From the NCBI GenBank assembly GCA_900088475.1, contig FLMG01003788.1, positions 23,204-87,203 of the forward strand: a DNA stretch of 64,000 bases. Reading direction: 5' to 3'. The stretch is from Hyphochytrium catenoides. Taxonomy: Eukaryota > Protista > Hyphochytriomycota. A model generated the notes under the pieces. It did no database searches, was not told where the DNA came from, and worked only from the letters and a program-made list of their open reading frames with translations. The position numbers were made by a program, and so were the translations under genes. This document shows, piece by piece, positions 2,050 to 42,654 of this stretch (the first letter of the stretch is position 1; each line of letters begins with the position of its first letter).

Positions 2050-2867
2050 CTCTCTCTCTCTCTCTCTTTATCTCTCTGTCTCCAGCTCTATATCGTCGTG
2101 CAGGTACCGCCCTGCTTCTCTCTTTGTTGGGCCATCCTCACTCTGTCTCAACCTCTCCAGCTCGCACTGCTGATGTTCTCTCTCTCTCTGTCTCTCCCTC
2201 TCCTCTCATCAGTGGAAGTTGTCTCTTCTCCTCTGCACCATTTTAGGATCAAGCGTTGCCGATGGATCCAGATGCTGGTCTGATCAGGGCTTGTCTCAGT
2301 TGCTCGTGTGCCTGCCTCCCCTCCTCCCTCTTCTTTTCTCTCCCTTCTCTCTTCTCTCCTCTCCCTCTCTCTTTCTCTCCTATCTTTCTCTCTCTCCCTT
2401 CGTCTCTCTGTTTTCTCTCTTTCACCTACCTGCTTTCTTCCTCTCTTCATCCCCCCACTTTGATTCTGATCGAGGCGCTGGCTGCGCCGCACACTTCTTT
2501 CCTCTCTCACTTTTGGCTTTTCCTTCGTTCAGTGCCAAGGAGAGAAACGAATAGGAAGCGGGATCTCTGCTTTTCTGCTCAATTTCCTCTCTCTCTTTCC
2601 AACTCCCTTTCGGATAGTCCCTTGCTCTTCTGACCACTGGAGAGTACTACTAGTCCATTCCTGAGGGTTAAGAATAGAGAAAGAGAGATATTCAGGGAGA
2701 GAGACCTTGACTCTCTCCTCAACCTTTTTACCTCCCGTTAGTTGATAGCACAAAAGAGAGAAAGAGACACCTGGCTGCTTGTCTCGTCTCTTCATTGTCC
2801 TACTTCCTCTCTTTTTCCGGAGCGAAGGTCCTTTATGTGGAGAGAAAGAGAGAAGAGAGAGAGAGTA

Positions 2868-5800
2868 ATGGAGAATCGTCAGCTTTCTCCTCTCTCTTCT
2901 TCTCTTCCCCTACCTCGCCTCTCTTCCCCTTCCTCGTCCTGCAGTTCTCTCCTCCTTCTTTCCTCTTCCCTCTCTCTTCTTCTCTTCTTCTCCTCATCCC
3001 CTCTTCTCCTCGCCACCTCTTCCTCTTCTTCTCTCTCTCTCCCTTCTCTCTTCATCTCTTCCTCTGTCATCCCCGGTGCAGGGAGAGGCGTCTTCTCTCT
3101 CTCTCCCTTGGAAGAGGGAGAGACGGTGGAAGAATGTTGGACACTGAAGCTTCCCATCGGCATCGCCCGCGCTGGACTGCTCATGGATTATATCTGGCAA
3201 TATAACAGCGACTACGAACTCTATACATTTGGCTATTGTTCTCTGTACAACCACCAGACGAACTACTCGGTGACCAAGTACTGGATGCCTCCGGCGCAGG
3301 AGGAGAGAGACGGAGAGAGAGAGAGAGAAAGAAGAAAGAGACGAGGAGGAGAGAAGAGGAAAGACAAGCCTGACTTTCTCTTGGATGAGACGGAAGAGTA
3401 TCGGCCTTACAAATTCAATGGGGACTTACTGGGATCTCCTTTTCTTCTCTCCTCCTCTTCCTCCGAGGAGAGAAGAGAGAAGAGCAAGAGAGAGTTGCCC
3501 TCTTCTTTCCCTTTCCCTTTCACTACGAGCGGAGATCTACGGCTGGTGGCATCGAGAGACACGGAAGCAGGAGAGGAACTCTTTGTCTCTTATGGAAGTG
3601 AGTGGCTCCCGGCTCGAGGGTTGGAAGAGACTCCCTTCTCAGGGAGAGAAAGAGTGGAAGAGCGCTGTGACTTCTCTCTCTCTCCCGCTTTAGAGGAAGA
3701 GAAGACGATATGTGCGCCTCTCCCAGGTGTCCAAAGAGTGCAGAAGCCTGATGTTACTATCGGACCTTCCAAGATTCCTGGTGCAGGGAGAGGAGCCTTT
3801 GCAAAGAGGAAAATAAGAGAGAGAGAGACGGTGGAGCTTGCCCCTGTACTTCTCGTTCCTTTTCATCACGTCGTCTTTTCTCTCGTGGAGAACTATGTAA
3901 TCAGAGGAAAAGGAGAGAAGACTGCGCTTCTCCCTCTCGGCTATGCAAGCATGTACAATCATGACAAGAAGCCCAACTTGGTCTATAGCTGGGCAAACTT
4001 TGAAGAGGAGGAGAAGAAACGGAGGGGAGAAGGAGAGAGAGAGAATGCGTCTCTCTCTGCTTCGTCTCTCTTTCTTAACTTTACAGCGCTGAGAGATATT
4101 GAGGATGGAGAAGAGCTGACCATTGACTATGGAGACAGATGGGAAGAGGCGTGGAAAAGTTACCTTCTCCGCGTAAACGAGCATCATCTCTCTCTCTCTT
4201 CTTCTCTCTCTTCCTCTCTCTCTTCTTCTCCTTACCCAGAATTCTATCATTCAGTGGAGCCACCAGCAGAACTCTTAGAGAAATGGCCCAAGACAGGAGC
4301 AGTTGGAATGGAGGTGGACGCTCCGTCTCTCCCTGTCTCTCTCTCTCCCGCCAGTGACACATCCTCTCTCTCTCACTCTCTCTTTCTCGATGCTTCAACC
4401 CTCAATAGCGCAGGAAGAGGCGTCTTTGTCGGGAGAGACTACCGCGCGGGAGAGATCGTGGAAACGTGTCCTCTTCTTCTCATTCCGTCTCACTCTCTCT
4501 CTTACAATATCCTCATAGATTATGTATGGACCAAGAGCTCGCATGAGAGCTTTCTCTCTATGGGATTCTGCATGCTTTACAATCATCAGACAGAGAACAA
4601 CGTGGCCAATCATGACAACAATCTTGGAGTGGAAGAGAGAGAGAGACTCAAGAGAGACTTCTTTCTCTCTCTCCTTGGAAAAGAGGGAGAGAGAGAAGGG
4701 GAGCTCCGTAACCGCAGTTTGGCTACCTGCCTTAGTGAAGAGGAGAGAAAGAAAAGAGGAGAAGACAACGGACTTACGTGTAAAGAAGAAGGAGAGAGAA
4801 GAAGAGAGAGAGAGAGAAAGCTTATGGAAGAGCTGTCTCTTCCTTTCTCTCTCGAAAAGAGCTTCAGCTACGTTGCAAGAAATGATATCGGAAAAGACCA
4901 AGAAGCCTTTGTCACCTACGGCCAAGAGTGGTTTGACAGCAGAGACATCAAGGAAGAGGCCAAGCCCGAGAAGAAGGAAGGAGAAGAGAAAGAGAGAGAG
5001 AGAGAAGAAGAGGAAGTGAAGAAGAGACTTGTACGGCCCACGCCGCGGGCAGTGCATTATCCAGAGGTTTATCTCAATACGTCCAAGATCTTTGGCGCGG
5101 GGAGAGGCATCTTTGCCAAGAGAGAGTTCAAACTGGGAGAGATAGTGGAAGTCTCTCCCACACATAATCTTCCTCTTCAGCATCTTCGTCGCTCTCTCCT
5201 CGAGAACTATGTCTTTAGACAGAGGAAGAGTGAGAGAGGAGAGAAGGCGAAGAGAGAGAGAGAAGGAGAAGAAGATGAAGGAGAGATTGCCCTTCTTCCT
5301 ATGGGTCTTGGTGCTTTCTACAATCACGGAGGAGAGAAGAAGCACAACGTCAAAGTGCTTTGGTACGATGAAGAGAGAAAGAGCACATTCTCTTCTCTCT
5401 CTTCTACTTCTTCCTCTCTCTCCTATCTCGCGTTTGTGGCGACAAGAGACATTCTCCCTCACGAAGAGCTTCTCTTGGACTATGGAAGAGAGTGGGAGAC
5501 AGAGTGGGAGAGATATGGAAGATATCTAAGAGATTGCGTGGCGGGGAAGAATGACTGTGGCGAGAGAGAATTCTATTTCTCTCCCTCTCTCTCTCCCTCT
5601 CTCTCCTGGCCCACTACGGCTCAGGGGCTGGACACACAGGTCCAGGAGGCAGGATACGAGCCAGAATGTGGCGCCTACGTCTCTCTTTCTTCCATTCCTG
5701 GCGCGCATCGCGGTCTCTTTTCTGGGAAAACCTATGAGAGAGAGAAAGGGGGAGAGATTATTCTCTCTTGTCCCTCTCTTCCTGTCCCGTATGATGCTTG

Positions 5801-7400
5801 TCTCCAGACAGAGCTCATAGATTATGTTCTGGACTATTCAGAGGGAGAGAGAATGCTGATGATGGGCTACTGTCTCATGGCAAACCACGGCTCGGAAGAG
5901 AGAGAGAGCGTCAATGCTCTCTATATCTTGGAAGCCGTGAAAGGAAAGACGAATGGCAACATGCTGGGAGGGAAGAGGGAGAAGAAGGGAAAAGAGAAAG
6001 ACAGTTCAAAGGAGGAAGAGAAAGAAGATAACGACGAGCCAGAGGACGAGGAGGAGGAAGAAGAGCAAGAAGAAGAGGAAGGAGAAGATACGATGTATGA
6101 AGAGGATGACTTTGCCCCGGGCTTCTCTTTCCCTTTCCTTACAACGCCAAATGTGCATTTCCAGACGAGAGAGGGAGGACTGAAAGAGGGAGAAGAGATC
6201 CTTGTCTCTTTCGGGGAGGATTGGGCCAGAGCGCGGAACATCCCGGAAGTCTCTGGAGAAGAGAAAGAGAGAGAGAGACAGAGTGCTCTCTCTCTTCCCT
6301 CTCCTCTCTTCCCTTGTCCCTCTATTTTCTTGAGAGCTTCTAAGATCCCCGGCGCGGGGAGAGGAGTCTTTGCGAGAAGAGCCTTTCAAGAGGGAGAAAT
6401 CGTAGAAATGGCGCCTGTCTTACTCGTGCTCAAGGACCTGTTCCATGTAAGTCTCTCTCTCTCTCTCTCTGCTCTCTTTCTGTCTCTCTCTCTCTGCCGC
6501 GCGCGCCATCCTGCTCCTTGCTTCTCTTCCGATTTTCCGGCTCGTCTTCTGTTTCCCTTCATATTTTACTTTCTTAGATGCCCTATCTCGTTCTTCCTCT
6601 TTCATTTCTCTCCTTTCTCGGCCTTTCCTTGTTCCTCTTCAGCGCTTCAGGCCGACGTTTTTCTCTCCCTCTCTCTCTTCTCCTCTCTCTCTCTTGCTGG
6701 CCCTTGCTCACTTTTCACTTTTCTCCACCCACTATCTGCCTCCCTCTCCACTTTCTCTCTCTCTCTTTTTCCGTCTTACCTATCCCTTCTGACCACGCAT
6801 CTCCCTCTCTCTCTCTCTCTCTTTCTCCTCCCTTTCTTCCTCTCTCTTTCTCTCTCTCTCTCCCTCTCTCTCTCACAGGGCCATATCTCGTCCAACTACC
6901 TCTTCACCAGCAGAAAGAACGGCGTTGCCGCTCTTCCTCTCGGTCTTGGCGCCTTTTATAACCACGCACGACAGCCCAATCTCGAGTTTTTTTGGGCAGA
7001 ACCAGAGAGAAAGAAAGAGAAAGGACAGGAGAGAGACGAAGAAGATGAAGAAGAGGAGAAAGAGGAGAAGCCTTACTTTGCCTTCCGCGCTCTACGTCCA
7101 ATAGAGAGAGAAGAAGAACTGACGATTGACTATGGGGAAGACTGGGAGAGAGCCTACAATGAATGGCTGGGAGAGCTAGAGAGAGAGACAATCAATTCTA
7201 TCCTCGCGGGAGAGAAAGAAAAGAGAGAGAAGATGCGCCCTTTCTTTCATAGTATTGTCGTCCCTGACACTCTCTCCTGGCCAGAGACTATCCCTGTCAG
7301 CGAAAGAATGTCCACTCCTACGTCTCTCCCGAGGGATGAAGAAGAGAAGAGAGGAGAGAGAGAGATTCCTATGCTCTCAGTCTTGCACGATGAGCTGTAA
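2868..7400 (+). CDS. Six-SET-domain protein (three tandem SET pairs) with putative signal peptide and C-terminal HDEL; exons 2868-6446 and 6879-7400, ~1366 aa (alternative ATG at 2835)
   Basis: Six copies of the SET motif series (S.IPGAGRG.F ... NH ... GEE...(D/S/T)YG) at about 3050-3605, 3750-4155, 4380-4935, 5065-5510, 5670-6225 and 6320-7160. The GTAAGT donor at 6447 and CAG acceptor ending 6878 are phase 0 and join DLFH|GHISSNYLF, matching the other repeats. The ORF ends VLHDEL*. Confidence 0.9.
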   Translation: MENRQLSPLSSSLPLPRLSSPSSSCSSLLLLSSSLSLLLFFSSSPLLLATSSSSSLSLPSLFISSSVIPGAGRGVFSLSPLEEGETVEECWTLKLPIGIARAGLLMDYIWQYNSDYELYTFGYCSLYNHQTNYSVTKYWMPPAQEERDGERERERRKRRGGEKRKDKPDFLLDETEEYRPYKFNGDLLGSPFLLSSSSSEERREKSKRELPSSFPFPFTTSGDLRLVASRDTEAGEELFVSYGSEWLPARGLEETPFSGRERVEERCDFSLSPALEEEKTICAPLPGVQRVQKPDVTIGPSKIPGAGRGAFAKRKIRERETVELAPVLLVPFHHVVFSLVENYVIRGKGEKTALLPLGYASMYNHDKKPNLVYSWANFEEEEKKRRGEGERENASLSASSLFLNFTALRDIEDGEELTIDYGDRWEEAWKSYLLRVNEHHLSLSSSLSSSLSSSPYPEFYHSVEPPAELLEKWPKTGAVGMEVDAPSLPVSLSPASDTSSLSHSLFLDASTLNSAGRGVFVGRDYRAGEIVETCPLLLIPSHSLSYNILIDYVWTKSSHESFLSMGFCMLYNHQTENNVANHDNNLGVEERERLKRDFFLSLLGKEGEREGELRNRSLATCLSEEERKKRGEDNGLTCKEEGERRRERERKLMEELSLPFSLEKSFSYVARNDIGKDQEAFVTYGQEWFDSRDIKEEAKPEKKEGEEKEREREEEEVKKRLVRPTPRAVHYPEVYLNTSKIFGAGRGIFAKREFKLGEIVEVSPTHNLPLQHLRRSLLENYVFRQRKSERGEKAKREREGEEDEGEIALLPMGLGAFYNHGGEKKHNVKVLWYDEERKSTFSSLSSTSSSLSYLAFVATRDILPHEELLLDYGREWETEWERYGRYLRDCVAGKNDCGEREFYFSPSLSPSLSWPTTAQGLDTQVQEAGYEPECGAYVSLSSIPGAHRGLFSGKTYEREKGGEIILSCPSLPVPYDACLQTELIDYVLDYSEGERMLMMGYCLMANHGSEERESVNALYILEAVKGKTNGNMLGGKREKKGKEKDSSKEEEKEDNDEPEDEEEEEEQEEEEGEDTMYEEDDFAPGFSFPFLTTPNVHFQTREGGLKEGEEILVSFGEDWARARNIPEVSGEEKERERQSALSLPSPLFPCPSIFLRASKIPGAGRGVFARRAFQEGEIVEMAPVLLVLKDLFHVSLSLSLSALFLSLSLCRARHPAPCFSSDFPARLLFPFIFYFLRCPISFFLFHFSPFSAFPCSSSALQADVFLSLSLFSSLSLAGPCSLFTFLHPLSASLSTFSLSLFPSYLSLLTTHLPLSLSLFLLPFFLSLSLSLSLSLSQGHISSNYLFTSRKNGVAALPLGLGAFYNHARQPNLEFFWAEPERKKEKGQERDEEDEEEEKEEKPYFAFRALRPIEREEELTIDYGEDWERAYNEWLGELERETINSILAGEKEKREKMRPFFHSIVVPDTLSWPETIPVSERMSTPTSLPRDEEEKRGEREIPMLSVLHDEL
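6447..6878 (+). other. Spliceosomal intron (432 nt, CT-rich, in frame and stop-free)
   Basis: GTAAGT ... (CT)n-CACAG. Removing it restores the sixth SET domain; its translation is S/L/F low complexity. Confidence 0.85.
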
Positions 7401-16392: not shown

Positions 16393-18281
16393 CTACTCTC
16401 TCTCTTCCCAAAGAGAGAGAACTCTCGCGGTAGAGAGAGGCTCGGCGGAGAGAGCGGAGGAGAGAGATGCCCGTCTTCCAGGGGAAAGCCCACTGCTGCT
16501 GCCACCAGGGATGGAGAGAGAAGAGAGAGGAGGGGCAGGGGAGAGAGAGCTGATCGCTGCTGAGAGAGAGAGGGAAGTTGATCCCAAAGAGGATCGCCTT
16601 GTTTCTGAGGAAGAGGAGAGAGAAGAGAGAGGTGCAGCCTGACAGGAAGAGAAAGTAGCCGGTGGATCTGGAGAAGAGAGACTCTTTCTGTGTCGAGGAG
16701 GTGAAGAGAGAGACTCTCCGGCTCCGGAAGAGAGAGGAGGAGGAAAAGGAACGTCGATTGCAGGAGGAGAGAATGAAGAAAAAGAAGGAGAAGACGGCAT
16801 AATAGGAGGAGAGAGAGAAGAAGAAATGGGAGGAGGAAGAGTGAAATCAGCAGTTTTATACGGGGGAGAGAGTGAGAGAGAAGGAATACCGGATGAAGTG
16901 ACGGGAGAGGAAGCAGAAGCAGAGAGAGAAAGAGGAGGAGGAGAGAGAGAAGAAGAGAGAGACGACGAAGAGGACGGAGCAGGAGAAGAGAGAAGAGGCA
17001 CCTCCAGGACTCTCATCCGGCTCCTCAGTAAAACACAGTCATTGGGATGCTGGAAGGCCAAGAAAGTCGCTTTCCCCATGAGCATCAGGACCGAAAGGCC
17101 TCGATTTAAACAGAAGTCCACCACGGACATCGTCCACATCTCTCTCTCTCTCTCTCCTCCCTCTTCCCCGTCTTCCACACAGACTCTGTCTTCTCTCTCT
17201 TCCACCAACAGCCGTCCGTCCCGTAAGTCGATCCTGTAGGAACACATGTGAGGAGGGAGACCGAGGTAGATGAGAATGAGATAAGAAGAGAAAAGAGACA
17301 CCAGATGATCAGCGCGACTCTCATACTCTTTCTCACGGCCACAGGATAGCTGTCATACATGAGAAAGGCTTGAGAGAAAGAGAAGACAAGCGTGAACGAG
17401 AAGAGCCACGCGGAGAGAGAGAAACAGAAGACGCCTGCAATGGAGAGAGAGAAGAGAGACATCTCTGCAAGAAAGAGCAGCGCGTCCACTGTTCCTAATG
17501 ACCGAGAAAGAAGAGCGAGATTCCAGAGAGAAGACTGCCGAAGAAAGAGAAAGGCCGCGCAGAAGACATGAGGGAGAACCAGCATCTGTCTCTCTCTCTC
17601 TGTCATCGGAAGTAATAGATAACAATAGTAAATGGTGCCTCCGGAGAAGAAGAGAGAGAAAGAGAGAAGACTGCTGCTCATGACTTTTCTCCATCGCCAC
17701 CAAAAGAGAAAGAAGTCTCTCCCGAAAAAGCCTTCCATCACGGAGACGTTGCTCTCTCTCTCTGTCAGCTCTGTGTAGGTGCGGACAGGAGTCATGAAGA
17801 GAAGCCTCTCCTTTCGCATTCTCCCTTCTTTCTCTCTTTCTGTTTTCTTCTCTCTTCCGGTCTTCCCCTCCCTCTCTCTCCTTTTATCGTCTCCCCTCTT
17901 TGTCGCTTGTGAACGCTGTGTCTCTTCCTTAAAAATGCCGATGCGAGACTCCTTGTCCTCTTTCTTTGGAGAGAAGAGAGAGAGAGACTGTCCGATGCTG
18001 TTTTTCTCTGGTTCTTCGTCTGGAAGAGATGGAGAAGGGAAGACACGCCTGTTGTCTCTCTCTTCTGTTTTGTTTCTCTCTTCTCCTTCTCTTCCTCTTC
18101 TTCTCCTCTCGTCTTCTTCTGCTCCTGCTCCTCGGAGAACATTGTCAATTTCTTCTCTCGCTTGAGAGAGAAACTTCTTGGAAGAATGGTTCAGAGGAGG
18201 ACGCGTGCGAAGATGCTGCGTCAGCTTGAGAGAGAGCGTGCACGTGGTGCAAGAGAGATCTTCTACAAGTGGAGAGATCAT
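16393..18281 (-). pseudogene. Membrane-protein family copy 1, broken by a 1-nt frameshift (pseudogene or assembly error)
   Basis: ORFs 17106-18425 and 16393-17301 together carry the family motifs (AREEID, MTPVRTYTEL..ESN, YDSYPV..RK.MR, DFCLNRG.SVLMLM, AFQHPNDC..RSR). There are 29 nt instead of 30 between W and IY; one extra A in the run at 17291-17294 restores the frame. Confidence 0.8.
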
Positions 18282-20035
18282 CCTCCTTATCCAAGAGAAG
18301 GGGGAGGACAAGAGAGAGAAGAGAGAGAGGGAGAGAGAAAGAGAAAGGGAACGGAGGGGAAGGAGAGAGAGAGAGACCGCTGGCGCCGTTGCTTTCCTCT
18401 CTAGATCTTTGGCTTGAGGTGTCAATCAACGTATAGACATCTCTCCTTCTTCTATAGAAGAAACGAGAAGCCAGGAAAGAGAATCAAGCAGAAGGCGGAG
18501 AAGAGAGAAGAGAAAAAAGAGTAATAAAGAGACAGAGAAAAGAGGTTTGAAGAGAGCGTAAGTTAAGATTTCTGTCGTCTGCCGCGAGTGGCCGCGGTGG
18601 GGCCTACCAAGGGGAACATTAGTCGTAGATTGGTGTCTGTGTCTCTTCTTCTTTCTGTCTCTCTCTATCTCTTTCGTCCTCTCTCTCTCTCTCTCCTCTA
18701 TTATCCCAGTGTCAAATCTAACCACCGCATCAGCAGTTTTCTCCCTCTTCTTTCTCTCTCTCTATTTCCTCTGCCCTCCTCTTCCTTGCGTACCTTTTGA
18801 GTGACCAGTGATGACGAGGGACACGGGGACAGGAGAGGGAACAATGAAGCCAAACTTATACACGGAGAAAGACAGAGAAATGAGAGAAATGGTGTCAAGT
18901 GCGAGACGGAAGAGAGAAGCCAGGACACTGCAGTTTGGTGTGAAGTCAAGTGATTGGAGGGCAGAGAGAAAGCAAGCAATAGATAGTTCTGAGAGCGGGA
19001 GAGAAAGGAGAGAGAGAGGGAAAGAGAGAGAGAGAGGGTAAGAGAGAGAAGAGAGTGGGAGGGAGGGAGAGAGAGACAGAGAGAGACACAGAGAGAGAGA
19101 CAGAGAGAGACACAGAGAGAGAAGAGACACACAGAGAGAGAAAGAGACAGAGAGAGAGACACACAGAGGGAGAGAGCGAGAGAGAGAGAGAGAGAGGGAG
19201 AGAGACACTTTGATGAGGGGGTCCCAGAGCAAAAAAAAGATGCGTAGACATAATACCGAATAATGATATTGTTTATGTGATATACCTGGCATTTTATTCC
19301 TAACATGAACGACCGTTACATGTGTGGAGGGTCATGAAGTGCACTCGTCATCTCCTACTGTCACCTGCTGGCTGACAATATTGGTCTTCTGGCTCCTGTT
19401 GCTTCCAATCAATGACTCTTCTTTGTGAGAATCAGAAGATGATGATGGACCCAACAACCACCAATCGGCAGCTCGCTGCCTAGTAGTTATTAATCATCAG
19501 CAAGGCGAAGGCTGCCGGCGAGCCAAGGGCGGTAGAGGAGTAAGAGTTATTATGCCACTACTTATATTTTTAGAAATTGCTGTTATTAATAATAGTGGCA
19601 CTATGACGCTGAATGAATGAAGTTGGTGAGGTTGTCCTTCTCCTTCCATCATCATCTAGATATGACGAGCTGATCGCTATCATCATCATCACTGCTTGTT
19701 GTTACGGTGTGGTGGGTGGTGTGGAGGTGGTTAAGATGTGTTGCCTGCTGCTGCTGCTGCATGCTGTTCTTCATTAGTGTGGCAGGAAAGAAGGCGCAAT
19801 ACCATCACCACCACCACCACCTCCTGCTGCTGCTTGTGGTGCCTCTACGTGCTGCGCAGTAGTAGTATACACCTGCCATAGGTACTCATTGTTCGCCAAC
19901 TATGACGCTGCCCTTCTTCTCTGTTCTACTACCACCTCTTCTTTTTCTCAAATTCACTATAATCTTGTAATTTTATGTTGATTGGTGTTGTGGTCCTAGA
20001 TATTTTTTGGCGGCTGCTGTCGTCGAACGGACCAA

Positions 20036-22285: not shown

Positions 22286-24184
22286 ATGGCCTCTTCCTCG
22301 ACCGCCAAAGCTCTTCGCATTCTTATCGTTGGAGGTGTTGCAGGTGGAGCCTCTGCCGCCGCTCGGGCTCGCAGACTCTCCGAATCCGCGATCATCACGA
22401 TCCTGGAGAAAGGGCCGTACATTTCCTATGCAAACTGCGGTATCCCGTACCACCTCGGCAAGGTTATTCCTAATGAATCTGATCTGATTCTTCAGACGCC
22501 CAAAGCGCTCGGCGAGAGATTCAACCTGGACGTGAAGATCAACACGGAGGCCATTGCCATTTCTCCTGAGAAGAAGACGGTCTTGGCGCGGAACCTGGAG
22601 ACACAGGAGGAGAGAGAGATCCCCTATGATAAGCTGATTCTCTCTATGGGCGCGCAGAGCATCGTCCCCTCCCTCCCAGGGACAAATCTCGATGGCGTGC
22701 TTTGTCTGCAGACCATCCCAGATCTTCAGAAAGTAAAAGAGAGAATCGACAGAGTTGGGGCGCGGTCTGCGGTGGTCATCGGCGGCGGGTTTATCGGCTT
22801 GGAAGCCGTAGAAAATCTGGTACATTTGGGTCTGAAGGTGACGCTCATCGAGAAGAATAACCAGGTGTTTATGCCTTTTGACCCAGAAATGGCTGCGGCT
22901 GTGAGGCGGGAGCTCGAGAAGAACGGCGTTGACGTCCGCCTCGGAGTAGAGTTCACAGGCGTGGAGAAGGCAGGGCGAGATGGGGAAGAAGAGAAAGAAG
23001 AAGAGAAGACAGGCAGTCTCTTGGTGCGGTACAAGTCTTCCGGAAGAAGAGGCAAAGAAGCAGGGCAGAATGGGGATCATCATCTAGGAGAGGAGAGCAT
23101 TGCCACGGACCTCGTTCTTATGGCGATAGGGGTCAGGCCACGGACAAAGCTAGCGGAGAAGGCAGGCGTAAAGATAGGAGAGAGAGGCATCAAAGTAGAC
23201 CGCTTTATGCGGACAAACGTGCCAGATGTCTACGCCATTGGCGACCTGGTCGAGGTCACGCAGCCCCAGCTCGGGACCTCGGTCTACATCGCTCTCGCTG
23301 GGCCCGCCAATAGACAAGGAAGGCTTGTGGCCAACCACATCTTTGGAGAGGAGAAGGAGGAGAAGAGAGGAGGGGAAGAGAAAGAAGAGAAGAAAACAAA
23401 GAAAGGCTATCGAGGCACAATGGGCACAGCGATCTGTAAGGTCTTCGGGGTCAACGCTGCCTCCACGGGTCTCTCGGAGAAGGTTCTCTCTCGGGCAAAG
23501 ATTCCTCATCGCGCCATCGTTGTCCACCCTAACAACCACGCAGGATACTATCCAGGTGCGAGACAGATGGCGCTTAAGCTTATCTTTAACCCTGAGGACG
23601 GGGGAAGAGTCCTCGGAGCCCAAGCCGTGGGAGGAGAAGGTGTTGACAAGAGAATTGACGTTCTCTCTCTCTCCATCCAAGCGGGTTTCTCTGTCTTTGA
23701 CCTGGAAGAAGCAGAGCTCGCTTACGCGCCGCAGTTCTCTTCTGCGAAAGATCCTGTTAATATGGCTGGATTCGTCGCCTCTAACTCGTTAAGAGGAGAG
23801 TACCACGCTATCCGCGCGCCAGAGCTTCTCTTCTCTCTCTCCGGAGAGGAGAGAGAAGATGGGGAGAGAGGAGAAGAGAAGAGAAAGAGAGAGAAAGGAG
23901 AAGCTTTCCAGATTGTGGATGTGCGGACAAAGGGAGAGTTTGAGAAAGGCTTTATCCCTGGCGCCATCAATATCCCGATTGACCAACTGAGAGAGAGAGT
24001 GGGAGAGCTCTCTCTCTCTCTCCCGACAGTCACTTACTGTCGCGTAGGCTTCCGCGGGTACTTGGGCTATAGGATCCTTCGGCAGCAAGGGTTCGAGAGA
24101 GTGTACAACCTGGACGGAGGGATGAGGACCTGGGATGAGTTCTATGAGTTCCCTACGGAGCGCCCAGGAGAGAGGAAGAAGTGA
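22286..24184 (+). CDS. CoA-disulfide reductase / NADH-dependent persulfide reductase with C-terminal rhodanese domain (CoADR-RHD, Npsr-like), 632 aa, intronless
   Basis: FAD motif IVGGVAGGASAA, redox Cys motif SYANCGIPY, NAD motif VIGGGFIGLE, VYAIGD, YYPGA, ELAYAPQFSSAKDPVNMAG, and rhodanese motifs IVDVRT..EF..G.IPGAINIP, YCRVGFRG, VYNLDGG. Confidence 0.95.
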   Translation: MASSSTAKALRILIVGGVAGGASAAARARRLSESAIITILEKGPYISYANCGIPYHLGKVIPNESDLILQTPKALGERFNLDVKINTEAIAISPEKKTVLARNLETQEEREIPYDKLILSMGAQSIVPSLPGTNLDGVLCLQTIPDLQKVKERIDRVGARSAVVIGGGFIGLEAVENLVHLGLKVTLIEKNNQVFMPFDPEMAAAVRRELEKNGVDVRLGVEFTGVEKAGRDGEEEKEEEKTGSLLVRYKSSGRRGKEAGQNGDHHLGEESIATDLVLMAIGVRPRTKLAEKAGVKIGERGIKVDRFMRTNVPDVYAIGDLVEVTQPQLGTSVYIALAGPANRQGRLVANHIFGEEKEEKRGGEEKEEKKTKKGYRGTMGTAICKVFGVNAASTGLSEKVLSRAKIPHRAIVVHPNNHAGYYPGARQMALKLIFNPEDGGRVLGAQAVGGEGVDKRIDVLSLSIQAGFSVFDLEEAELAYAPQFSSAKDPVNMAGFVASNSLRGEYHAIRAPELLFSLSGEEREDGERGEEKRKREKGEAFQIVDVRTKGEFEKGFIPGAINIPIDQLRERVGELSLSLPTVTYCRVGFRGYLGYRILRQQGFERVYNLDGGMRTWDEFYEFPTERPGERKK

Positions 24185-26757: not shown

Positions 26758-28194
26758 ATGCTTGGTCCCTCCAATGAAGACGCTGGAGGTGGGGTGACAG
26801 TCGTTCTGTGCGAAGCGTTGGTCCGCCATCTGCACGGCGAGCCTGAGCTCAATGATCTCTGCCAGAAGTCTCTGATAGAGGCACGGACTGAGATCGACAA
26901 GGCGTTAGAGCGAACAATGCTGAAGAGAAAGGGAAAGACTACAAAGACAGGAAGCCCTTCTTCCTCATCTTCTCCTCCTCCTCTTCTACCGCCTGTCCAC
27001 CCTTCAATAACGGGTCTCTCTCTCTCTCCTGCTCTCTCCTATTCCCCTCCGTCTCTTCTCGTTCCCGTCAAGTCCAGATCCAGTAGCATCCGGCCCAAGC
27101 CAATGATAAATAGCCTCATAGAGAAGACCAGCAGCAAAAAGAAGAGCAGTAAGAAACGACAGAAAGAGAAAAGAGCAGGAGAAGAGAGAGAGACAGAGAG
27201 AGCGCCAACAGCTGCTGGCCTAGGAGAAGGAGGAGGAAGAACGAGAAAGAGAGAGAAACTCCGCGTGATGGCGGCGGTGCAGTCCTACGCCCCTCTCACT
27301 GTGGCGCAAAGCAATGTCACGGTGATGGAGAGAATCTTTGGTCAGAGATTCAGTGACTGGTGGTGGAGAAAGAGAAAGATCCTAGCCCATCCTCTCGTCG
27401 GACTCGTGCTCTGTCTCGCTGTAGCGGCGCTCGCATTGACGGCCATCGGCGCATCTCTCTCTGAAGCACATCGCAGTCTCTCTGCTATTCTCTATGGACT
27501 TATCCTACTCTACCTCGCAGTGCTGCAGTCTTTTTATCTCAACTTTGCCCTTGCAGTTCGTTCTTTCCAGACCATCGACTCGCTTCTCTTCATGGCAGAG
27601 ATCACCCAGTTTGCTCTCTCTCTCGCTTGCGTTCTCTGTTTCTCTCTCTCTGGATGGATCCTCTCTCTCTCTACGGCTTTCTCTCTCACGTATCTCAACC
27701 TAAGCTATGACAGCTTTCCTGTCGGGCTAAGAAAGACAATGCGAGGGCCGCTTGTCCTCTGGAGCTTGGCCTTCGCCTTGCTCTTAGCGGGGATCTATCT
27801 CCATCTGCCCGTCCACATGTGCGGGTACCGTCTGGACCTGAATAATGGGATGATAGACGAGGAAGAAGCTCTAAAAAAGGCGGATCTTTCGGAGTGGAAT
27901 CTCTCTCTCTTGGATTTTTGTCTCAACCGCGGTTTCTCTGTGTTAATGTTAATGGTTCGGACCACTTTCTTGGCCTTCCGCCATCCTAGTGACTGCACGA
28001 TCATCAGGAGCAGGATCCGAGTGATGGAGCTGCCGCTACCGCCGTCTTCTCTCTCTTCCTCGGCGGCCTGCGCTTCTTCTTCTCTCCTCTCGTCTCCCGC
28101 GTCTCTCTCTGCTGTCTCTCCTCCTCCTGCCTCATCAGCGACGACCCCCGTAGTTGAAATAGTAGGAGGGAGGAAGAGGGATATTAACTATTGA
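26758..28194 (+). CDS. Membrane-protein family copy 2 (uncharacterised multi-pass protein, 478 aa)
   Basis: Intact intronless ORF with ~6 hydrophobic segments; shares ordered motifs with the ORFs at 16393, 29926 and 47347. Confidence 0.85.
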   Translation: MLGPSNEDAGGGVTVVLCEALVRHLHGEPELNDLCQKSLIEARTEIDKALERTMLKRKGKTTKTGSPSSSSSPPPLLPPVHPSITGLSLSPALSYSPPSLLVPVKSRSSSIRPKPMINSLIEKTSSKKKSSKKRQKEKRAGEERETERAPTAAGLGEGGGRTRKREKLRVMAAVQSYAPLTVAQSNVTVMERIFGQRFSDWWWRKRKILAHPLVGLVLCLAVAALALTAIGASLSEAHRSLSAILYGLILLYLAVLQSFYLNFALAVRSFQTIDSLLFMAEITQFALSLACVLCFSLSGWILSLSTAFSLTYLNLSYDSFPVGLRKTMRGPLVLWSLAFALLLAGIYLHLPVHMCGYRLDLNNGMIDEEEALKKADLSEWNLSLLDFCLNRGFSVLMLMVRTTFLAFRHPSDCTIIRSRIRVMELPLPPSSLSSSAACASSSLLSSPASLSAVSPPPASSATTPVVEIVGGRKRDINY

Positions 28195-29925: not shown

Positions 29926-31395
29926 ATGGACGCGGTAGAGGCAGCAACCTGTTGCCTCTCCCAAGCCTTGGCAGCGCATTTGAGAGAGAGAAAGCCACGG
30001 TTTGTCTCCTATGAACAGTCAAGAAAGGCGCTCTTGGAGGCGAGAGAGGAGATAGACAATGCTCTTCTTCCCTCTTCTCTCCCTCCTCTCTCTTCTTCTC
30101 CTCCTTCTCCCTACCCGTCTCTCTCTTCTCTTTCCTCTCCGGCCATACAGAGCATCCAGAAGACAAAGGAGGCTTGGAATAAGCCAAGAGCAGAAGAAGA
30201 AGACGAAAGAGGCGAGAGAGGAAAGAAGGAAAAGAAGAAAGAGAGAGAGAGACGAAGAAGAGAGAGAGGAGAAGATGTCCCTTCCCAAAGGCTCCGTGTC
30301 ATGACGGCGGTCCAGTCCTATACAGAGTTAAGCCTAAGAGAGAGCAACGTAACAGTGATGGAGAGACTCTTCGGGAAGAGATTCTATGACGCCTGGTGGA
30401 AGAGAAGAAAGGTGCTTGGCCATCCTCTTCTTCTCTCTTTCCTTTTCGTCCTCGCCTGTGCCCTACATGGCGCCTATGCTGCTGTCTCTCTCCCGGAGAG
30501 AGAGAAAACGATCGCCGCGGCGGTCTATACTCTCTCTGTCTTCTACATCACGCTCCGGCAGACTTCTCTCTGGAACTTCTTTCTCCTTCGAAGAGCACTA
30601 AGCACGGTGGATGCCTTTCTCTTTCTTGGAGAGATGTGCTTCTTCGCTGTCTCTCTGTGCGGTGTCTTCTGTTTCTCTCTCTCCGGGTGTCTCTTCTCTC
30701 TCTCTCTCGGCTTTGCTCTCTCTCAAGGCTTTATAATGTATGACTGCTGCCCCGTGGTGCTCAGGAGAGGAATGAGAGCCGCGTTGGTTCTCTGGACGCT
30801 GACCTTTCTCTCTTCTCTCGCTTTCATTTACTTCCGCGTCCCTTCCGAGATGTGCACCTACAGCTTTGACCTAATGAACGGACTGGTAAGAGAGACAAAG
30901 GGCGGAGAAGCGGTGGGAGAGAGAAAAGAAGAGAGAGAGAAGAAAGAGGGAGAGAAAGAGTCAGAATGGACCATGTCCATGTTGGACTTCTGCCTCAATC
31001 GCGGGTTTTCTGTCTTAATGTTGATGCTCCGGACTACTTACTGGGCCTTCAAGCACCCGCAAGACTGTGTTATTATTAGAAGCAGGGTCACCGTGAGAGA
31101 GCTACCGGTGAGGGGAGAGAGAGGAGAGAAAGAAGAGAGAGAAAGAAGAGACAAGGGGATGATAATGGATCATCAAGGACCAAAGAGTAAGGTTGCTGTC
31201 CTTCCTCAGCAGCTGCTGGAGGGAAGGGAAGGAGCAGCTCTTCGGAACTCTAACGAAGAGGATAAAATGAGAGAGAAGAAGGACGGCGGAGAGAGAAGCA
31301 GAGAGAGAGACGACAAGGAGAGAGAGAGAAAAGAAAGAAAGAATTCCTTTGACAGGAGGAGACAGCAGATATTCCCCCTCAGTCTTGGGCAATGA
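29926..31395 (+). CDS. Membrane-protein family copy 3 (489 aa)
   Basis: Intact ORF with AREEIDNAL, RVMTAVQSYTEL, YDCCPVVLRRGMR, DFCLNRGFSVLMLM and AFKHPQDCVIIRSR. Confidence 0.85.
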   Translation: MDAVEAATCCLSQALAAHLRERKPRFVSYEQSRKALLEAREEIDNALLPSSLPPLSSSPPSPYPSLSSLSSPAIQSIQKTKEAWNKPRAEEEDERGERGKKEKKKERERRRRERGEDVPSQRLRVMTAVQSYTELSLRESNVTVMERLFGKRFYDAWWKRRKVLGHPLLLSFLFVLACALHGAYAAVSLPEREKTIAAAVYTLSVFYITLRQTSLWNFFLLRRALSTVDAFLFLGEMCFFAVSLCGVFCFSLSGCLFSLSLGFALSQGFIMYDCCPVVLRRGMRAALVLWTLTFLSSLAFIYFRVPSEMCTYSFDLMNGLVRETKGGEAVGERKEEREKKEGEKESEWTMSMLDFCLNRGFSVLMLMLRTTYWAFKHPQDCVIIRSRVTVRELPVRGERGEKEERERRDKGMIMDHQGPKSKVAVLPQQLLEGREGAALRNSNEEDKMREKKDGGERSRERDDKERERKERKNSFDRRRQQIFPLSLGQ

Positions 31396-32461: not shown

Positions 32462-34006
32462 TCAGAGCTCCGGCAGACTTTCAAGAGGATCTTCCCCCGC
32501 GGAATGACCGGAGCACCAGCCTTCCGCAGCCTCCTTCTTCTCCCTCGAGAAGGAAGAAGCCGCCGCGTATAAGAGAGAGGACGAGGATGGGGACGTGACG
32601 TCTGCAGAGAGAGAAGACATGGAAGAGAGAGACAGCAGCGTGTCCATCTTCCTCACCAGCTGCTCCACCTTGAAAGGCTTCAGAATGATATCGTCCATGC
32701 GCTGCTCAGGCACGCTTTCCGGTCATCCTGGGTCGCACTTGCCGTCAATGCAATCACTGGAATGGCATTTCTAGCTCTGCGGACGGCCCGACAGGCCTCA
32801 AATCCGTCCATGACGGGCATCTGACAGTCCATGAGGATCAAATCGTAGGCTTTTCCCTTGTTGAGCCTCTCTAACATCTGGGCGCCGTCCTCTGCCCAGT
32901 CCACGTCGCGGTATCCCTGCACCAAGAGGAGCTCCATGGCAATTCGGGCAGAGAGAGAGTTGTCCTCTGCTAGAAGGATGTGTTTCTTCTCTCTCTCTGC
33001 GGGAGAGAGAGGAGGGAAAGAGAGAGAGAGAGAGGGAGAAGAAGCCATACTGAAAGAGGAAGTGCGGGAAAGCCTTCCATCAACGGAGCTCGGTGACGTT
33101 AGAATAGAAAAATCTGACACATCTCGAGAGAGAGAGGGAGACCAACCAGCGGACCCGTTGTTCCAACAGCGGTCTTCTCCCCAATGACGATTGTTAGGGC
33201 CAAGAGCAACAAGTCTTCCTCTCTTTCTCTCTCTCCTTGGTCTTCTTCTCCTCCGCGCGAGACGCCCAACGGGACATGAAAAGAGAACGTGCTACCCTTT
33301 CTTGGTTCACTTTGCAGTGAGATGTCTCCTCCCATGAGAGAGAGAAGATCCTTGCAAATGGAGAGACCGAGCCCTGAGCCTCCGTACTTCCTGGTCGTGC
33401 TGTTATCTGCCTGGATAAACGGACGGAAGAGCTTTGCCTGTGTCTCCGGAGCTATTCCTATCCCTGTGTCCGAGACGCTTGCCTCCGCTATCACCACCCC
33501 TCCCTCCGCTTCTTTGCTGTCCTCTTCTCTTCTTCCGGTTGGCTCCGTCACCATGCTGCTCTCTCTCTCTTCTTGCAGAGGAGAAGTTTGTTCTCCTCTG
33601 TCTTCTTCTTCCCTTCTGTTTCGCGCAGGTCAACCAATTGCTTTCCCTCTCTTCTCTTGTTGTTGGAGGCGTTTCTTCTCTCTCTTCTTTCCCTAGCTTC
33701 TTTTCCGTTTTGTCGTTCATTGTTTGTCCTTGCGGACCGCTGTGCTGTCTTCTGCTTCTCTCTCCTCTCCGCCGGTCTCTCTTCTTCCCCATCTCCTCCT
33801 TATCTAACCGCTTTCTCTCCCGCTGTTGCTTTCTCTTTTCTCTCTCTTTTGCCGTCTCTTCCCGAAGAGACATGGAGACAACATGTACCTTTCCTCCGTC
33901 TTCTGTGAATTTGATGGCGTTAGAGAGAAGATTCACTAGGATTTGCTCTATTCGCTTGGAGTCTCCCACCACCGCTACTGACTGTAAAGTCTCAGCCGCT
34001 TGATAG
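32462..34006 (-). pseudogene. Hybrid histidine kinase remnant (HATPase_c plus receiver domain), at least three frame disruptions, no H-box visible
   Basis: N-box GDSKRIEQILVNLLSNAIKFT, G1 VSDTGIGI, F/G2 LFRPFIQAD..TRKYGGSGLGLSI, and receiver ILLAEDN ... LILMDCQMPVMDG ... IALTA ... MDDIILKP are spread over four ORFs in different frames. A single missing G at ~32700 breaks GMDD. Putative acceptor at 34007. Confidence 0.8.
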
Positions 34007-34084
34007 CTGGAGAGAAAGAAGGGTTAGAGAAAGAGAAAGAGAGAGAGAGAGAGGGGAGAGAGAGAGAGAGAGAGAGAGATTGGG

Positions 34085-38050: not shown

Positions 38051-39546
38051 AGAAGGGAATGGGTCAGCCACCGAGCTCAAGCTACAAATGTAAGGATTTC
38101 GAGGGTGATGGACGAGGACAATCTATGAATGAGCATTAATAATCAATGGAGAGTTTTAGCGGACAACGTGCTTGCGTAAGGAGGAGGTTTCTCCTTACAA
38201 TTATGGTCACAACTAATCATTATTCATCAGGTTCCAGAAGAAAGCACTCAGGAAAACGAGGACTAGTAGCTAGTATCTGGTCAAATAACGGACGCCTTTC
38301 TCCCCTCCTTCCTAGGTGATGACCTTCGCACCGCTCGTCGGTCCCTCTTCTCGTCGTAGTATTGATCACGATGATAGGCCTAGTATTAGGCAGCCGGCGG
38401 GCGGCGCTAACTGGTGAGGCGCTATCGAGCGTCACTGATGAAGCAGAGAGCTAGGGAGCTGCAGGAGGAGGAGGACAGGCAGGCAGAAGTCTAGGGGACA
38501 TTGGGATCCCAAGGTTGGTCAGCCCACCAGTCCCGCAGTGCTCGAGCAGGGCAATCCGCCGTCTTCTTCGTAGACAGTAAGCTGTGTATTGACCCCAGGC
38601 CCTGATATTGTACAATAGTCTCAGATCTATGCGCTTTTGCTGTCTTTTTTAACCTATCGTGTCAGTCAGGTAGTGATACTGATATGGTTTACAGCTCTAC
38701 ATGAACCCTTATATTCACGCTTTTTGGAACAACCATGGCTGGTTCCAAAGAGATAAGAATTCCCTTGTTATCTCCTTGTAGTTCTCTCTCTCTCCTCCTT
38801 TCTCTCTCTCTCTNNNNNNNNNNNNNNNNNNNNNNNNNNNNNNNNNNNNNNNNNNNNNNNNNNNNNNNNNNNNNNNNNNNNNNNNNNNNNNNNNNNNNNN
38901 NNACCGAAATCGTCCTTTACAATCAGCAAGACTCGGTCTCCTTTTCTCTCTCTTCCACTTCATCGCTTCTCTCCGCTGCGTGCCTCTCTCCCCCTTTCTT
39001 CTATTGCATTGCCTTTATAAAAATGGTAGTCGTACTTCGAACTGCTTGGCTCTAGTTCTCATCCTCCGAAAAGAACTGTCTCGGGCAAGATCCCTCGCTC
39101 TTTCTCTTGCCCAGACAGCAACCAGCACCTGAGACTGGGCTAGCGGCTTCCTCACTCTTCTTGTTGGTCGCAGTCTCTCCTTATCTCTCTCCTCTCTATC
39201 GCACATCCCCTCCGCTTTATCTCGAAGAGCATCATCATTTCCTCACTCTTGCGGCTCCTCCTTGTTCTCTTTCTCACACTCTTCTTCTCCTTTTTGGCAC
39301 TTCTTACGCTCTCTCTTCTCTTCTCTTCTCTTCTTCTCTTCTCTTCTCTTCTCTTTCCTCTTCTTTTCTTCGCTACGCGTTCTTCTCTATAGGCAGCGTC
39401 ACTCGTGGTTTCTTCTGCACCTCTGCTGCTTCAAGCTCTGCGTCTTTCCTTATCCCTGTTTTTCCTCCCCGGTACATAGCCAGCAGCCAGAGAAGAGAGC
39501 GAGAGAGAGAGAGAGAAGGAAGAAAAGCATCAACAACGACAGAAGA

Positions 39547-41520
39547 ATGGCAAGCGCGGAAGCGAGCTCGGCTTCCCACGGCCGTCTCTTCTCTCTCTCT
39601 CCTTCGCTGCTGTCGCGCTATTATGAAGATCAGATCCGTCAGGGCAACTGGAGCATCGCCAGAGCGCTAACATTATCTATGGGCTACGGGCTCATCGCGC
39701 TGCGGCCCTATCAACAGGGAGAGACGATCTTTGAAGAGACGCCGGTGGTAGCTGAGCAACTTGTCAGGAACAAACACATCGTGCTCTCCTGCGGACAGTG
39801 CTTCAAATGGCTGGGATCGGTAAACACACAGCTTGATCTGCTGGCAGGGAGGATCTCTAGAGAGCAGCTGGCGTCTGGGGCTCCTCCTCCTCCTCCCTCA
39901 GGCTGTCGCCTTCCTGATCTGGCCACTGCCTGCGGAGGGCGAGAGGGAGGAAGAGAAGAAGTAGGAGAATCTTTCCACTCTTTCTTCTCCTGCCCTGCCC
40001 ATTGTGGAGAGCTCTTTTGCTCTTCTTCCTGCCTGGAGACAGCGATGAGGGACGGGCACTTGCTGCTCTGCACAGGGACAGTGGAGGAGATGGAGCATCC
40101 GATCGTGCAGTTCAAGTTCCATGCCATTCAGAGCTATGAGCTTTTTCTCTCGGCAGGAAAGGTCTGCTGCCGCATTCTCTCCCGTTATAAAGAGCTTCAA
40201 CACGCTCAAAGTCTCTCTCCTGAGGCAGCCTGCAAAGAGGCCGTCTTAGAGTTTGCGGGGCTAGAGAGCGCCATGTGGTGGGAGGGCAAAGTAAGTCAGA
40301 AAAGACTGGGGAAGAGCGCGCTAAAAAGCGAGGAGGAGTTCCAGGCGGACATGAAGAGACATGCGGAGATCTCCCTTGGCCTGTTGACGAGTGCGTTGGC
40401 GGTAGATCCAGCTGACCCCATAGCGCGGCTCTTTACATTAGAGCAGTATGGTGCGAACCTATGGTTCTAGAGCCCTGTCTATTGATCTTTCTTCTCTCTT
40501 ATTCTCTCTCTCTCTTCTTCTCTTGCCTGTGTATCTCTCTCTCTCTCTCTCTCCGTCTCTCTGTCTCTCTGTCTCTCTTTTTAACCCTCTTCTCCAGGGC
40601 AGAATTTTCAACTCGTTCCCTTTTCCGTTTTCTTTGTTCTCGCTTCCCACTTCCTCTTCCAAACTCTCCAACCTCCTCTTCTTGTTCGTCCTGTCGTGGA
40701 TCACCTATTAACGCCGTTGTCTCATGCCTTGACTTATTCCTCCTCCTCCTCGTCCAATGGCTTAGGCCGCATCCTGGGCGCCTTAAACAGGAATCAGATG
40801 AGCATACAATGGGACTCTCCCGTCCTTCAATACGTCAAAGCGCTGAAGAGAACGGCGGAAAGGATTGCCCAGCAAGCCAAAGACGAAGAAGCAGAAAGAG
40901 AGACTGATAAGCTAGTAAACGCCGCGAGAGAGGCGCTGTCCACTTATGAGGACGCAATAGAGGAACACTTGGAGGCAATAGAGACGCTCAGGGTTGAAGA
41001 TAGCTCTGACGAGGAGGAAGAAATGGAAGAAGAAGAGTGGGATCTGGCAGCAAAAATTGACCATTATGCACGGGCTATGGAGGACGAGGAGGAAAGAGGA
41101 GAGGTGGAGAAGACGAAAGTAGACGAGTGCTGCAGAGGAAGAGAGAAGGATGGTGACGGTGACGAGAAAGAAGAAGAAAATATGGGTGAAGGAGACGATG
41201 CTGTGGATGATCTGATAGAAAGAGGAGAGGATCTCTTTCCAGAGTTTGACGGGATTGGCCTCTTTCCCTTGGTTGCCGTGATGAATCACTCGTGTCAGCC
41301 TTCCTGTAAGGTCCTATGGCCTTCTTGGGAGGAGGAATCCCGACCCCGTGCCCGAGCCCGCGTGGTTGCCCTTCGGCCGATAGAGAGAGGAGAGGAGCTT
41401 CTGCAGAGCTATATCGACGCAGATCTTCCCTTGGAAAGGAGGAGACGGAGGTTACTGCCCTACGGCTTCGTATGCACTTGTCCCAAGTGTAAGGAGGAAG
41501 AGAAACAAGCGGGAACGTGA
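39547..41520 (+). CDS. SMYD-type (SMYD5/ATXR2-like) SET-MYND lysine methyltransferase; exons 39547-40450 and 40766-41520, ~552 aa
   Basis: GYGLIALRPYQQGETIFEETP, zinc-finger motifs CGQC, CPAHC, FCSSSC, H..LC; phase-1 intron GTGCGA...TTAG gives EQYGRILGALNRN; GIGLFPLVAVMNHSCQPS, ALRPIERGEELLQSY, post-SET YGFVCTCPKC. Confidence 0.9.
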
Positions 41521-42285: not shown

Positions 42286-42654
42286 TTACTGCTGCTCCTG
42301 CTCCTCAGCTCTAAGAGCTCTGGCAGCCTTGGTGTTAACTGTGAGCTTCATCCTGCTGCAGTGGTTGCTCACCTGGCAGGAGTAGTAGGTGGTGCCAGGC
42401 TTGTCCAGGGTCACTCTCAGTGGACCAGAACTGCCCAGAAGGGTTTGCTCATTGGCGCAGCTGGCGAGATCGGCTGCGGTGGCGTGAGTGTATACGTTGT
42501 GTCCCCTTACAAAGTTGAAGACCAGGGTGTCTCCTACGTTGGCATTTACAGTCTGTGCGCCAAAGCTGGTGCTCCAGGAGAGAGGAATGTCCGCGGCGGT
42601 GGAGAGCTGAGCCACAGAGGCGATGGCAGCGAGGAAAGCTAGAAGACGTGCCAT
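42286..42654 (-). CDS. Secreted cupredoxin, phytocyanin-like blue copper protein, 122 aa
   Basis: Signal-like MARLLAFLAAIASVAQLSTA; VGDTLVFNF..GHNVY; YYSCQVSNHCSRMKL supplies the type-1 Cu ligands H, C, H, M; two extra Cys could form the phytocyanin disulfide. Confidence 0.88.
   Translation of the reverse strand: MARLLAFLAAIASVAQLSTAADIPLSWSTSFGAQTVNANVGDTLVFNFVRGHNVYTHATAADLASCANEQTLLGSSGPLRVTLDKPGTTYYSCQVSNHCSRMKLTVNTKAARALRAEEQEQQ

Follow-up and report, generated by a model that had tools for sequence, protein, structure and literature searches.

Can SET-domain methyltransferases work inside the secretory pathway? The question is raised by a gene at 2868–7400 of a 64,000-nucleotide stretch of contig FLMG01003788.1 (GenBank assembly GCA_900088475.1), the whole of which we call the window. 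Lysine methylation has, to our knowledge, been treated as a nuclear and cytosolic modification; diatom silaffins, in which lysines are heavily methylated, are the only well-known luminal case of which we are aware, and we know of no demonstration of the enzymes responsible. On the + strand of the window a reading frame listed as open from 2742 to 7400 (1552 codons, with the TAA stop at 7398–7400) encodes six SET domains in a row and ends in HDEL, the retrieval tetrapeptide of the endoplasmic reticulum (ER). A preliminary description of this DNA had proposed a candidate ER-luminal methyltransferase akin to the secretory SET proteins of diatoms, a proposal that is supported by family homology, by the leaders of the family members and by their -EL ends. 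Judged from its sequence, the protein is probably an ER-retained member of a family of secretory tandem-SET proteins and would methylate luminal cargo.

Cargo methylation in the secretory pathway, rather than methylation of histones, is the most likely function because the protein belongs to a SET family that bears signal peptides. In the mechanism we propose, the N-terminal hydrophobic segment would act as a cleaved signal peptide or a signal anchor and direct the protein into the ER, where the C-terminal HDEL would hold it via retrieval by the KDEL receptor, and the luminal SET domains would use S-adenosylmethionine (SAM) for the N-methylation of lysines (or similar amines) on passing secretory proteins. 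For the window protein itself we infer ER import, retention, a protein-lysine substrate, luminal activity and a luminal supply of SAM.

A motif scan of the frame yielded six sets of GxGRG, NH and (Y/F)G..W motifs, which bears out the six SET domains of the preliminary description, and family-specific hidden Markov models (HMMs) built here for the A- and B-type domains recognised all six with 73–158 bits in the order A-B-A-B-A-B. The A-type SET1 (3048–3605, on the + strand like all features of the gene) carries the motifs PGAGRGVFS, LYNHQ and EELFVSYGSEW and scores 24.7 bits with the Pfam SET model (PF00856) and 101 bits with the A-HMM. It is followed by the B-type SET2 (3753–4142; PGAGRGAFA, MYNHDKKPN, EELTIDYGDRW; Pfam 39.7 bits, B-HMM 158 bits), for which a SET fold was modelled, by the A-type SET3 (4380–4931; NSAGRGVFV, LYNHQ, QEAFVTYGQEW; Pfam 19.7 bits, A-HMM 104 bits) and by the B-type SET4 (5067–5495; FGAGRGIFA, FYNHGGEKKHN, EELLLDYGREW; Pfam 37.9 bits, B-HMM 146 bits). 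The third pair consists of a degenerate A-type SET5 (5673–6224; PGAHRGLFS, MANHG, EEILVSFGEDW; A-HMM 73 bits) and a B-type SET6 that is split by an intron (6324–7145; PGAGRGVFA, FYNHARQPN, EELTIDYGEDW; Pfam 48.8 bits, B-HMM 128–129 bits). With the Pfam cut-off of 22.4 bits, applied piece by piece, SET1, SET2, SET4 and SET6 pass, SET3 falls short and SET5 is not detected; the six Pfam matches expected earlier were thus obtained in part. The whole protein reaches 139 bits and exceeds the curated cut-off. SET is the only Pfam family that matches anywhere in the protein, N- and C-terminal pieces included, so the earlier statement that pre-SET, post-SET and chromatin-reader domains are absent holds.

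The three A-B units share 36–40% mutual identity and a common plan, in which each unit closes with a tail motif: PEFYHSVEPPAELLEKW at 4236–4286 after unit 1, which fits the family motif P.FR..I..P.G.FP..W, and EFYFSPSLSPSLSW at 5568–5609 and PFFHSIVVPDTLSW at 7239–7280 after units 2 and 3, both in agreement with the family consensus. The catalytic set of GxG, NH and Tyr is kept in five of the six domains, namely as PGAGRG, YNH and VSYG in SET1, as PGAGRG, YNH..PN and IDYG in both SET2 and SET6, as SAGRG, YNH and VTYG in SET3 and as GAGRG, YNH and LDYG in SET4. SET5 reads PGAHRG, ANH and VSFG, with AHRG in the first motif and Phe replacing Tyr in the last. The lost Tyr (Y184 of the family consensus) is at least 90% conserved in the family, and the equivalent Tyr of SET7/9 (Y335) supports SAM binding. 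Because this residue is lost (Tyr to Phe) and YNH has become ANH, SET5 is probably weakened or non-catalytic. SET5 also carries a long acidic loop; a low-complexity loop of about 65 amino acids interrupts SET1, and in the AlphaFold model this insert and the inter-domain linker are disordered.

The preliminary description had read the coding span from 2868 without interruption to the HDEL stop. The frame stands; its uninterrupted translation of 1510 amino acids does not. An alignment of the three A-B units revealed an insert of 144 residues, rich in S, L, F and P, which is present in unit 3 only and for which units 1 and 2 have no counterpart. The DNA for this insert corresponds to a predicted spliceosomal intron (6447–6878, 432 nt, phase 0) that starts with GTAAGT, ends with CACAG, is CT-rich and contains no in-frame stop. 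The reading frame runs straight through it because the intron is in phase 0 and free of stops. Splicing gives the VLLV-11 residues-NY spacing of SET2 and thereby regains the spacing found in SET2 and SET4; the B-type HMM matches the spliced SET6 once, with 128 bits, as compared to two fragments of 39.6 and 78.6 bits in the unspliced form. In this model the first coding exon (2868–6446, with the donor CAT|GTAAGT at 6447) encodes the leader, SET1 to SET5 and the N-terminal third of SET6, and the last coding exon (6879–7400) encodes the remainder of SET6, the third tail motif, a linker, HDEL and the TAA stop. The frame has ATGs at 2835 and 2868, the latter being the first plausible start; from there the spliced product has 1366 amino acids. 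A donor scan found no other strong splice donor inside the frame: GTGAGT at 3598 was rejected, as it falls within the conserved YGSEW motif, and the GA- and CT-rich inserts in SET1, SET3, SET4 and SET5, which have no usable donor/acceptor pairs, were kept as coding loops. By its sequence the locus is a functional, intron-containing gene with at least two coding exons.

The HDEL end was confirmed. The tetrapeptide is encoded at 7386–7397 by CAC GAT GAG CTG, directly followed by TAA, and the protein end reads unambiguously ...IPMLSVLHDEL, with a low-complexity linker of about 35 amino acids before HDEL. The window contains no gene for typical ER residents such as BiP, PDI or calreticulin with which the end could be compared. 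A possible donor, GTAAAG, shares letters with the stop codon, and 46 nt further on follows a pyrimidine tract with TAG. An alternative 3′ splice from CT|GTAAAG at 7397 to TAG| at 7442 was considered and rejected, the 46 nt being too short for an intron and the added tail being non-conserved.

To what kind of family does the protein belong? Word-index protein searches with the window protein returned 4 and 2 matches and were swamped by low-complexity words. An exhaustive profile search with the three A-B units found 4887 relatives at E ≤ 1e-3, of which 158 are at E ≤ 1e-30. The A and B HMMs were used to dissect the best 152 matches and the window protein (153 in all): 115 proteins consist of a single A-B pair of about 400 amino acids and 17 are A-B-A-B. 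That SET enzymes are normally single-domain, as assumed in the preliminary description, is therefore wrong for the tandem-SET family, the basic unit of which is the A-B pair. In its basic form a family member consists of a signal peptide, SET-A, SET-B and a conserved tail motif. The consensus runs from the signal peptide via C.LYLAPS..GAGRG.FAG ... NH ... GEE.F..YG..WF in the A domain and G.CLSDV.V..S.IP.AG.GLFA ... NYC ... AMINH ... ATRDI..GEEL...YG..W..W in linker and B domain to the tail P.FR..I..P.G.FP..W, which is present after all three units of the window protein.

Homologues devoid of signals and of xDEL ends would have spoken for another location; both features were found. Many members have a textbook signal peptide 5–15 residues ahead of the first SET strand, e.g. 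before C.LYLAPS.IPGAGRG. In 53 of the 75 members with a scorable leader (71%), the leader has an 11-residue Kyte-Doolittle mean of at least 2.0; its median length is 30 amino acids. A C-terminal -EL occurs in 42 of the best 152 matches (about 28%) versus 2 of 120 unrelated control proteins (1.7%), which is an approximately 16-fold enrichment. In 19 of these 42 the end is [DE]EL, and the types include KDEL, NDEL, REEL, VDEL, EDEL, DDEL-like ends and one RRHDEL. P0155 combines a signal peptide, A-B-A-B and the end ...ERSEL in a single protein; P0002 has a signal peptide plus extracellular ShK domains.

Forms with three units are rare, being represented by the window protein, by P0008 (2237 amino acids, from the diatom Epithemia clementina) and probably by P0005. 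The latter, the best match of all (6.6e-118, six matched stretches), is an A-B-A-B-A protein of 889 amino acids encoded at 317–2986 of a short contig, where it is directly followed by a gene for a SET protein of 388 amino acids (2986–4152). The gene caller has probably divided one (A-B)x3 protein into these two, in which case the six-SET form would be present in at least one other organism. A close orthologue of the window protein was not found in the databases searched.

Labelled family members come from Epithemia (P0008), Paraphysomonas (taxid 36769) and Mallomonas annulata, the last two being silica-scaled chrysophytes; cluster look-ups put a name to 4 of 30 proteins. Bacillariophyta predominate in those ESM Atlas clusters that share the two-domain shape. 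Among the AlphaFold DB matches, B8C2A5, A0A1E7FIH2 and A0A1Z5JNH7 would, by their accession series, be diatom entries and A0A812... and A0A1Q9... dinoflagellate ones. The family is not diatom-specific; this term is too narrow because of the members labelled Paraphysomonas and Mallomonas, a point that concerns the published label (Bacillariophyceae-specific) and leaves the homology untouched.

This kind of family is already known, mainly from diatoms, but it is uncharacterised and has barely been studied. The most economical reading is that the family is the one called BacSETs in the literature and known from diatoms. BacSETs reportedly carry ER signal peptides. Like the window protein they are secretory-pathway SET proteins without chromatin modules, for which a role in the methylation of secretory cargo has been proposed, and in diatoms they are reportedly co-expressed with silica cell-wall genes at cytokinesis. 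The likeness is drawn via diatom homologues of the window protein (P0008 of Epithemia and the clusters dominated by Bacillariophyta) and via the descriptions in the literature; the window protein differs from the BacSETs in its three A-B modules and its HDEL end. Also the host differs from those of the diatom BacSETs in that it does not look like a diatom, its DNA being rich in GA/CT microsatellites.

The fold agrees with the motifs. An AlphaFold model of unit 1, built with 84 family sequences (mean predicted local distance difference test, pLDDT, 80; predicted template modelling score, pTM, 0.78), has two β-rich SET domains, a long helix and the tail. Foldseek matched it to 4rz0, 5h6z, 3kma, MLL1 and SUV420H1 with probability 1.00. 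Nearest to the B domain, by both Foldseek and HMMER, are three minimal SET enzymes, PfSET7 of Plasmodium falciparum (PFL0690c, 4rz0), Set7 of Schizosaccharomyces pombe (5h6z) and vSET of a Chlorella virus (1n3j/3kma), with E values of 2.9e-12 and 1.9e-10 and template modelling (TM) scores by target of 0.72–0.83. The minimal enzymes share with the domains of the window protein a compact SET core without pre- and post-SET zinc modules. They have a single SET domain and neither signal peptide nor xDEL end, being nuclear or viral enzymes that methylate histones, whereas the window protein has two diverged SET domains fused to one another, a family-specific tail motif and the whole module three times.

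Both vSET and Set7 work as homodimers, and this parallels the covalently linked A-B pair. Because of these homodimers it is plausible, by analogy, that each A-B pair is a fused and diverged dimer, probably an intramolecular pseudo-dimer of two minimal SET domains. The relative orientation of A and B seems to be conserved in the model, because the whole two-domain arrangement superposes on the representative of a diatom-dominated ESM Atlas cluster (TM 0.66, 317 residues aligned). In domain trees calculated from the A and B domains of the window protein and 69 best matches, as had been suggested in the preliminary description, the three A domains of the window protein form one clade (support 0.92) and the three B domains another (0.97), both on long branches. 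Because the A domains group together, and likewise the B domains, (A-B)x3 is by this sequence criterion a lineage-specific triplication of the whole A-B-tail unit. The nearest relative of the A domains in the tree, P0048, is encoded at L002:3436–4641, where EamA, DUF374, DAO and HNH genes crowd both strands in surroundings that resemble those of a prokaryotic or viral genome; a close relative of P0048 was not found in the bacterial and archaeal genome collection.

For SAM-dependent methylation in the lumen of the secretory pathway there is a precedent in plants, where pectin and xylan methyltransferases of the Golgi are fed by Golgi SAM transporters. By analogy, the window protein would likewise have a SAM-dependent domain facing the secretory lumen and would need SAM import. 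The plant enzymes are unlike it in their Rossmann class I fold, in their polysaccharide substrates and in being membrane-anchored type II proteins rather than soluble ones retrieved via xDEL.

Several points weigh against an ER-retained lysine methyltransferase. The first concerns the N-terminus. The hydrophobic stretch described earlier just ahead of SET1 is present at 2943–3014 (SSLLLLSSSLSLLLFFSSSPLLLA, rich in S, L and F), and it lies where family members carry their signal peptide; it may be a signal-peptide core or a signal anchor. It spans residues 26–49 from the ATG at 2868, and its Kyte-Doolittle mean peaks at 2.13 when taken over 11 residues and at 1.72 when taken over 19. The underlying DNA is CT-rich, and the caution already voiced that the stretch could be a chance product of such DNA was justified: when the other pure C/T runs of the window are translated, their 11-residue maxima have a median of 1.71 and a 90th percentile of 2.28. 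Its score falls within the range of such translations; the stretch is therefore indistinguishable from what CT-rich DNA would encode by chance and is by itself no evidence. It is only moderately hydrophobic as compared to clear signal peptides of the family (2.6–3.7) and begins about 27 residues from the ATG at 2868, which is late for a signal peptide. The first and last exons belong to a predicted gene model, and an assembly gap (N at 1101–1406) 1.5 kb upstream of the gene restricts conclusions on its 5′ end; further short runs of N are found near 13.7–15.1 kb, most gaps being flanked by CT/GA microsatellites. A Cys that is conserved in the family before each SET strand is absent from units 1 and 2. 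In about 70% of the listed members the C-terminus is not -EL, and the family as a whole is therefore secretory rather than strictly ER-resident. In the literature reached we found no demonstrated activity or substrate for any enzyme of the family, and nothing relevant on tandem or double SET domains or on SET together with biosilica. Finally, SET enzymes acting on small molecules exist, an example being BurB.

The late position of the hydrophobic core would be explained by a different first exon. Upstream of SET1 just one acceptor-like site, CAG| at 2944, has a good pyrimidine tract, and the only strong donor upstream is GTGAGT at 1688, which is preceded by ATG GGT AT (1680–1687). A coding mini-exon ATG GGT AT|GTGAGT at 1680–1687 would be phase-compatible with the acceptor at 2944; the protein would then begin with MGI-SLLLLSSSLSLLLFF...PLLLA|TSS and have a leader of about 37 amino acids, close to the family median. 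This speculative model, built by sequence logic, would place the hydrophobic core directly at the N-terminus; it is a possibility to which we give distinctly less than even weight. The window itself offers a clear-cut signal peptide of this organism for comparison: a small secreted protein similar to cupredoxin/plastocyanin, encoded at 42286–43014 on the − strand, has the classical signal peptide MARLLAFLAAIASVAQLSTAA.

Could the protein have the same secretory location and a different substrate, such as polyamines, lipids, glycans or small metabolites of the lumen? Papers citing Nemoto 2020 (Mar Biotechnol 22:551) state that the diatom enzymes are thought to target cell-wall proteins and also long-chain polyamines or putrescine, and the bacterial SET enzyme BurB methylates free methionine. 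The deviation of the A-type domain from the canonical NHxxxPN and ELxxDY motifs points in the same direction. The B-type domains, however, have fully canonical lysine methyltransferase motifs (YNH..PN, EELTIDYG), and the nearest solved folds are those of histone-lysine methyltransferases; we rate a non-protein substrate as unlikely.

Similarly unlikely is a secretory protein that is not a soluble ER resident, either since it remains inserted by an uncleaved type II signal anchor or since it moves on to the Golgi, to vesicles or to the wall, with HDEL being only partly effective or removed. With 1.72 over 19 residues the hydrophobic segment lies above the membrane-span threshold (a 19-residue Kyte-Doolittle mean of 1.6), and the only other 19-residue segment of the spliced protein that reaches this value is a buried strand of SET2 (residue 322). 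The distance of the segment from the ATG at 2868, the clearly recessed, anchor-like hydrophobic segment of P0003 and the lack of -EL in most family members would also suit an anchor or a post-ER location. Against this stands HDEL as the canonical retrieval signal, exposed at the extreme C-terminus after the linker, and even a type II anchor combined with a luminal HDEL would still yield ER residence.

That we are dealing with an ordinary nuclear or cytosolic SET enzyme or with a decaying gene, the signal having arisen by accident from a CT microsatellite and HDEL being a fortuitous end or not the end of the true last exon, is very improbable: the CT-rich stretch is statistically unremarkable and GTAAAG over the stop with TAG 46 nt on makes an alternative 3′ end formally possible, but the great majority of the family carries signal peptides, -EL ends are enriched in it, Pfam finds no chromatin modules or zinc-binding pre- and post-SET modules, a 46-nt intron would be far below the 432-nt one and would add a non-conserved tail, and a gene whose frame extends over 4.1 kb, with six domains conserved and an intron that keeps the frame, is not a decaying one.

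With the assignment as a secretory tandem-SET protein, a candidate enzyme family gains a clear definition, consisting of signal peptide, SET-A, SET-B, tail motif and often an xEL end. New are the HDEL-tagged member with three units, the explicit definition of the A-B-tail module, the quantified enrichment of xEL ends and the extension of the family beyond diatoms. The window protein shows that the A-B module can be multiplied, and as an HDEL-tagged member it is open to direct tests of localisation and activity. The host may be a non-silicifying heterotrophic stramenopile. In that case luminal SET methylation of secretory cargo would predate silica biomineralisation and be ancestral to stramenopiles, possibly to the SAR group (stramenopiles, alveolates and Rhizaria), a reading that we hold to be rather doubtful. 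If true, the system would be a secretory modification system of stramenopiles and not something that diatoms invented for silica; it would have the A-B pseudo-dimer as its basis and need an importer for SAM in the ER, and the (A-B)x3 enzyme would be its six-site, ER-retained form. The silica-specific role proposed for the family would then need revision, and a search for an ER SAM transporter would be justified.

The window contains a second, unrelated SET gene in two pieces (39262–40470 and 40696–41520, + strand), which looks SMYD-like (MNHSCQPSC..., C-terminal CTCPKC). Its product has no signal-like N-terminus and is presumably an ordinary SET enzyme of the cytosol or nucleus. Genes for paralogous multi-pass membrane proteins are dispersed over the window at 16393–18425 (− strand) and, on the + strand, at 26758–28194, 29926–31395 and 47347–48750. 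The paralogues have motifs in common, among them RVMTAVQ.Y.EL..ESN.TVME and LDFCLNRGFSVLMLM, and in the ESM Atlas no recognisable family was found for them (best score 0.71). At 22286–24184 on the + strand a single exon encodes a fusion of coenzyme A-disulfide reductase and rhodanese, the best matches of which have about 51% identity or less and are nearly all bacterial, some being fungal (Macrophomina, Leptodontidium); the reading frame carries GA-rich (E/K/R/G) insertions typical of the host genome. A fragment at 33406–34023 on the − strand contains the ATPase motif of histidine kinases, IEQILVNLLSNAIKFTEDGGKVHV, and probably represents a single exon of a gene for a hybrid sensor kinase.

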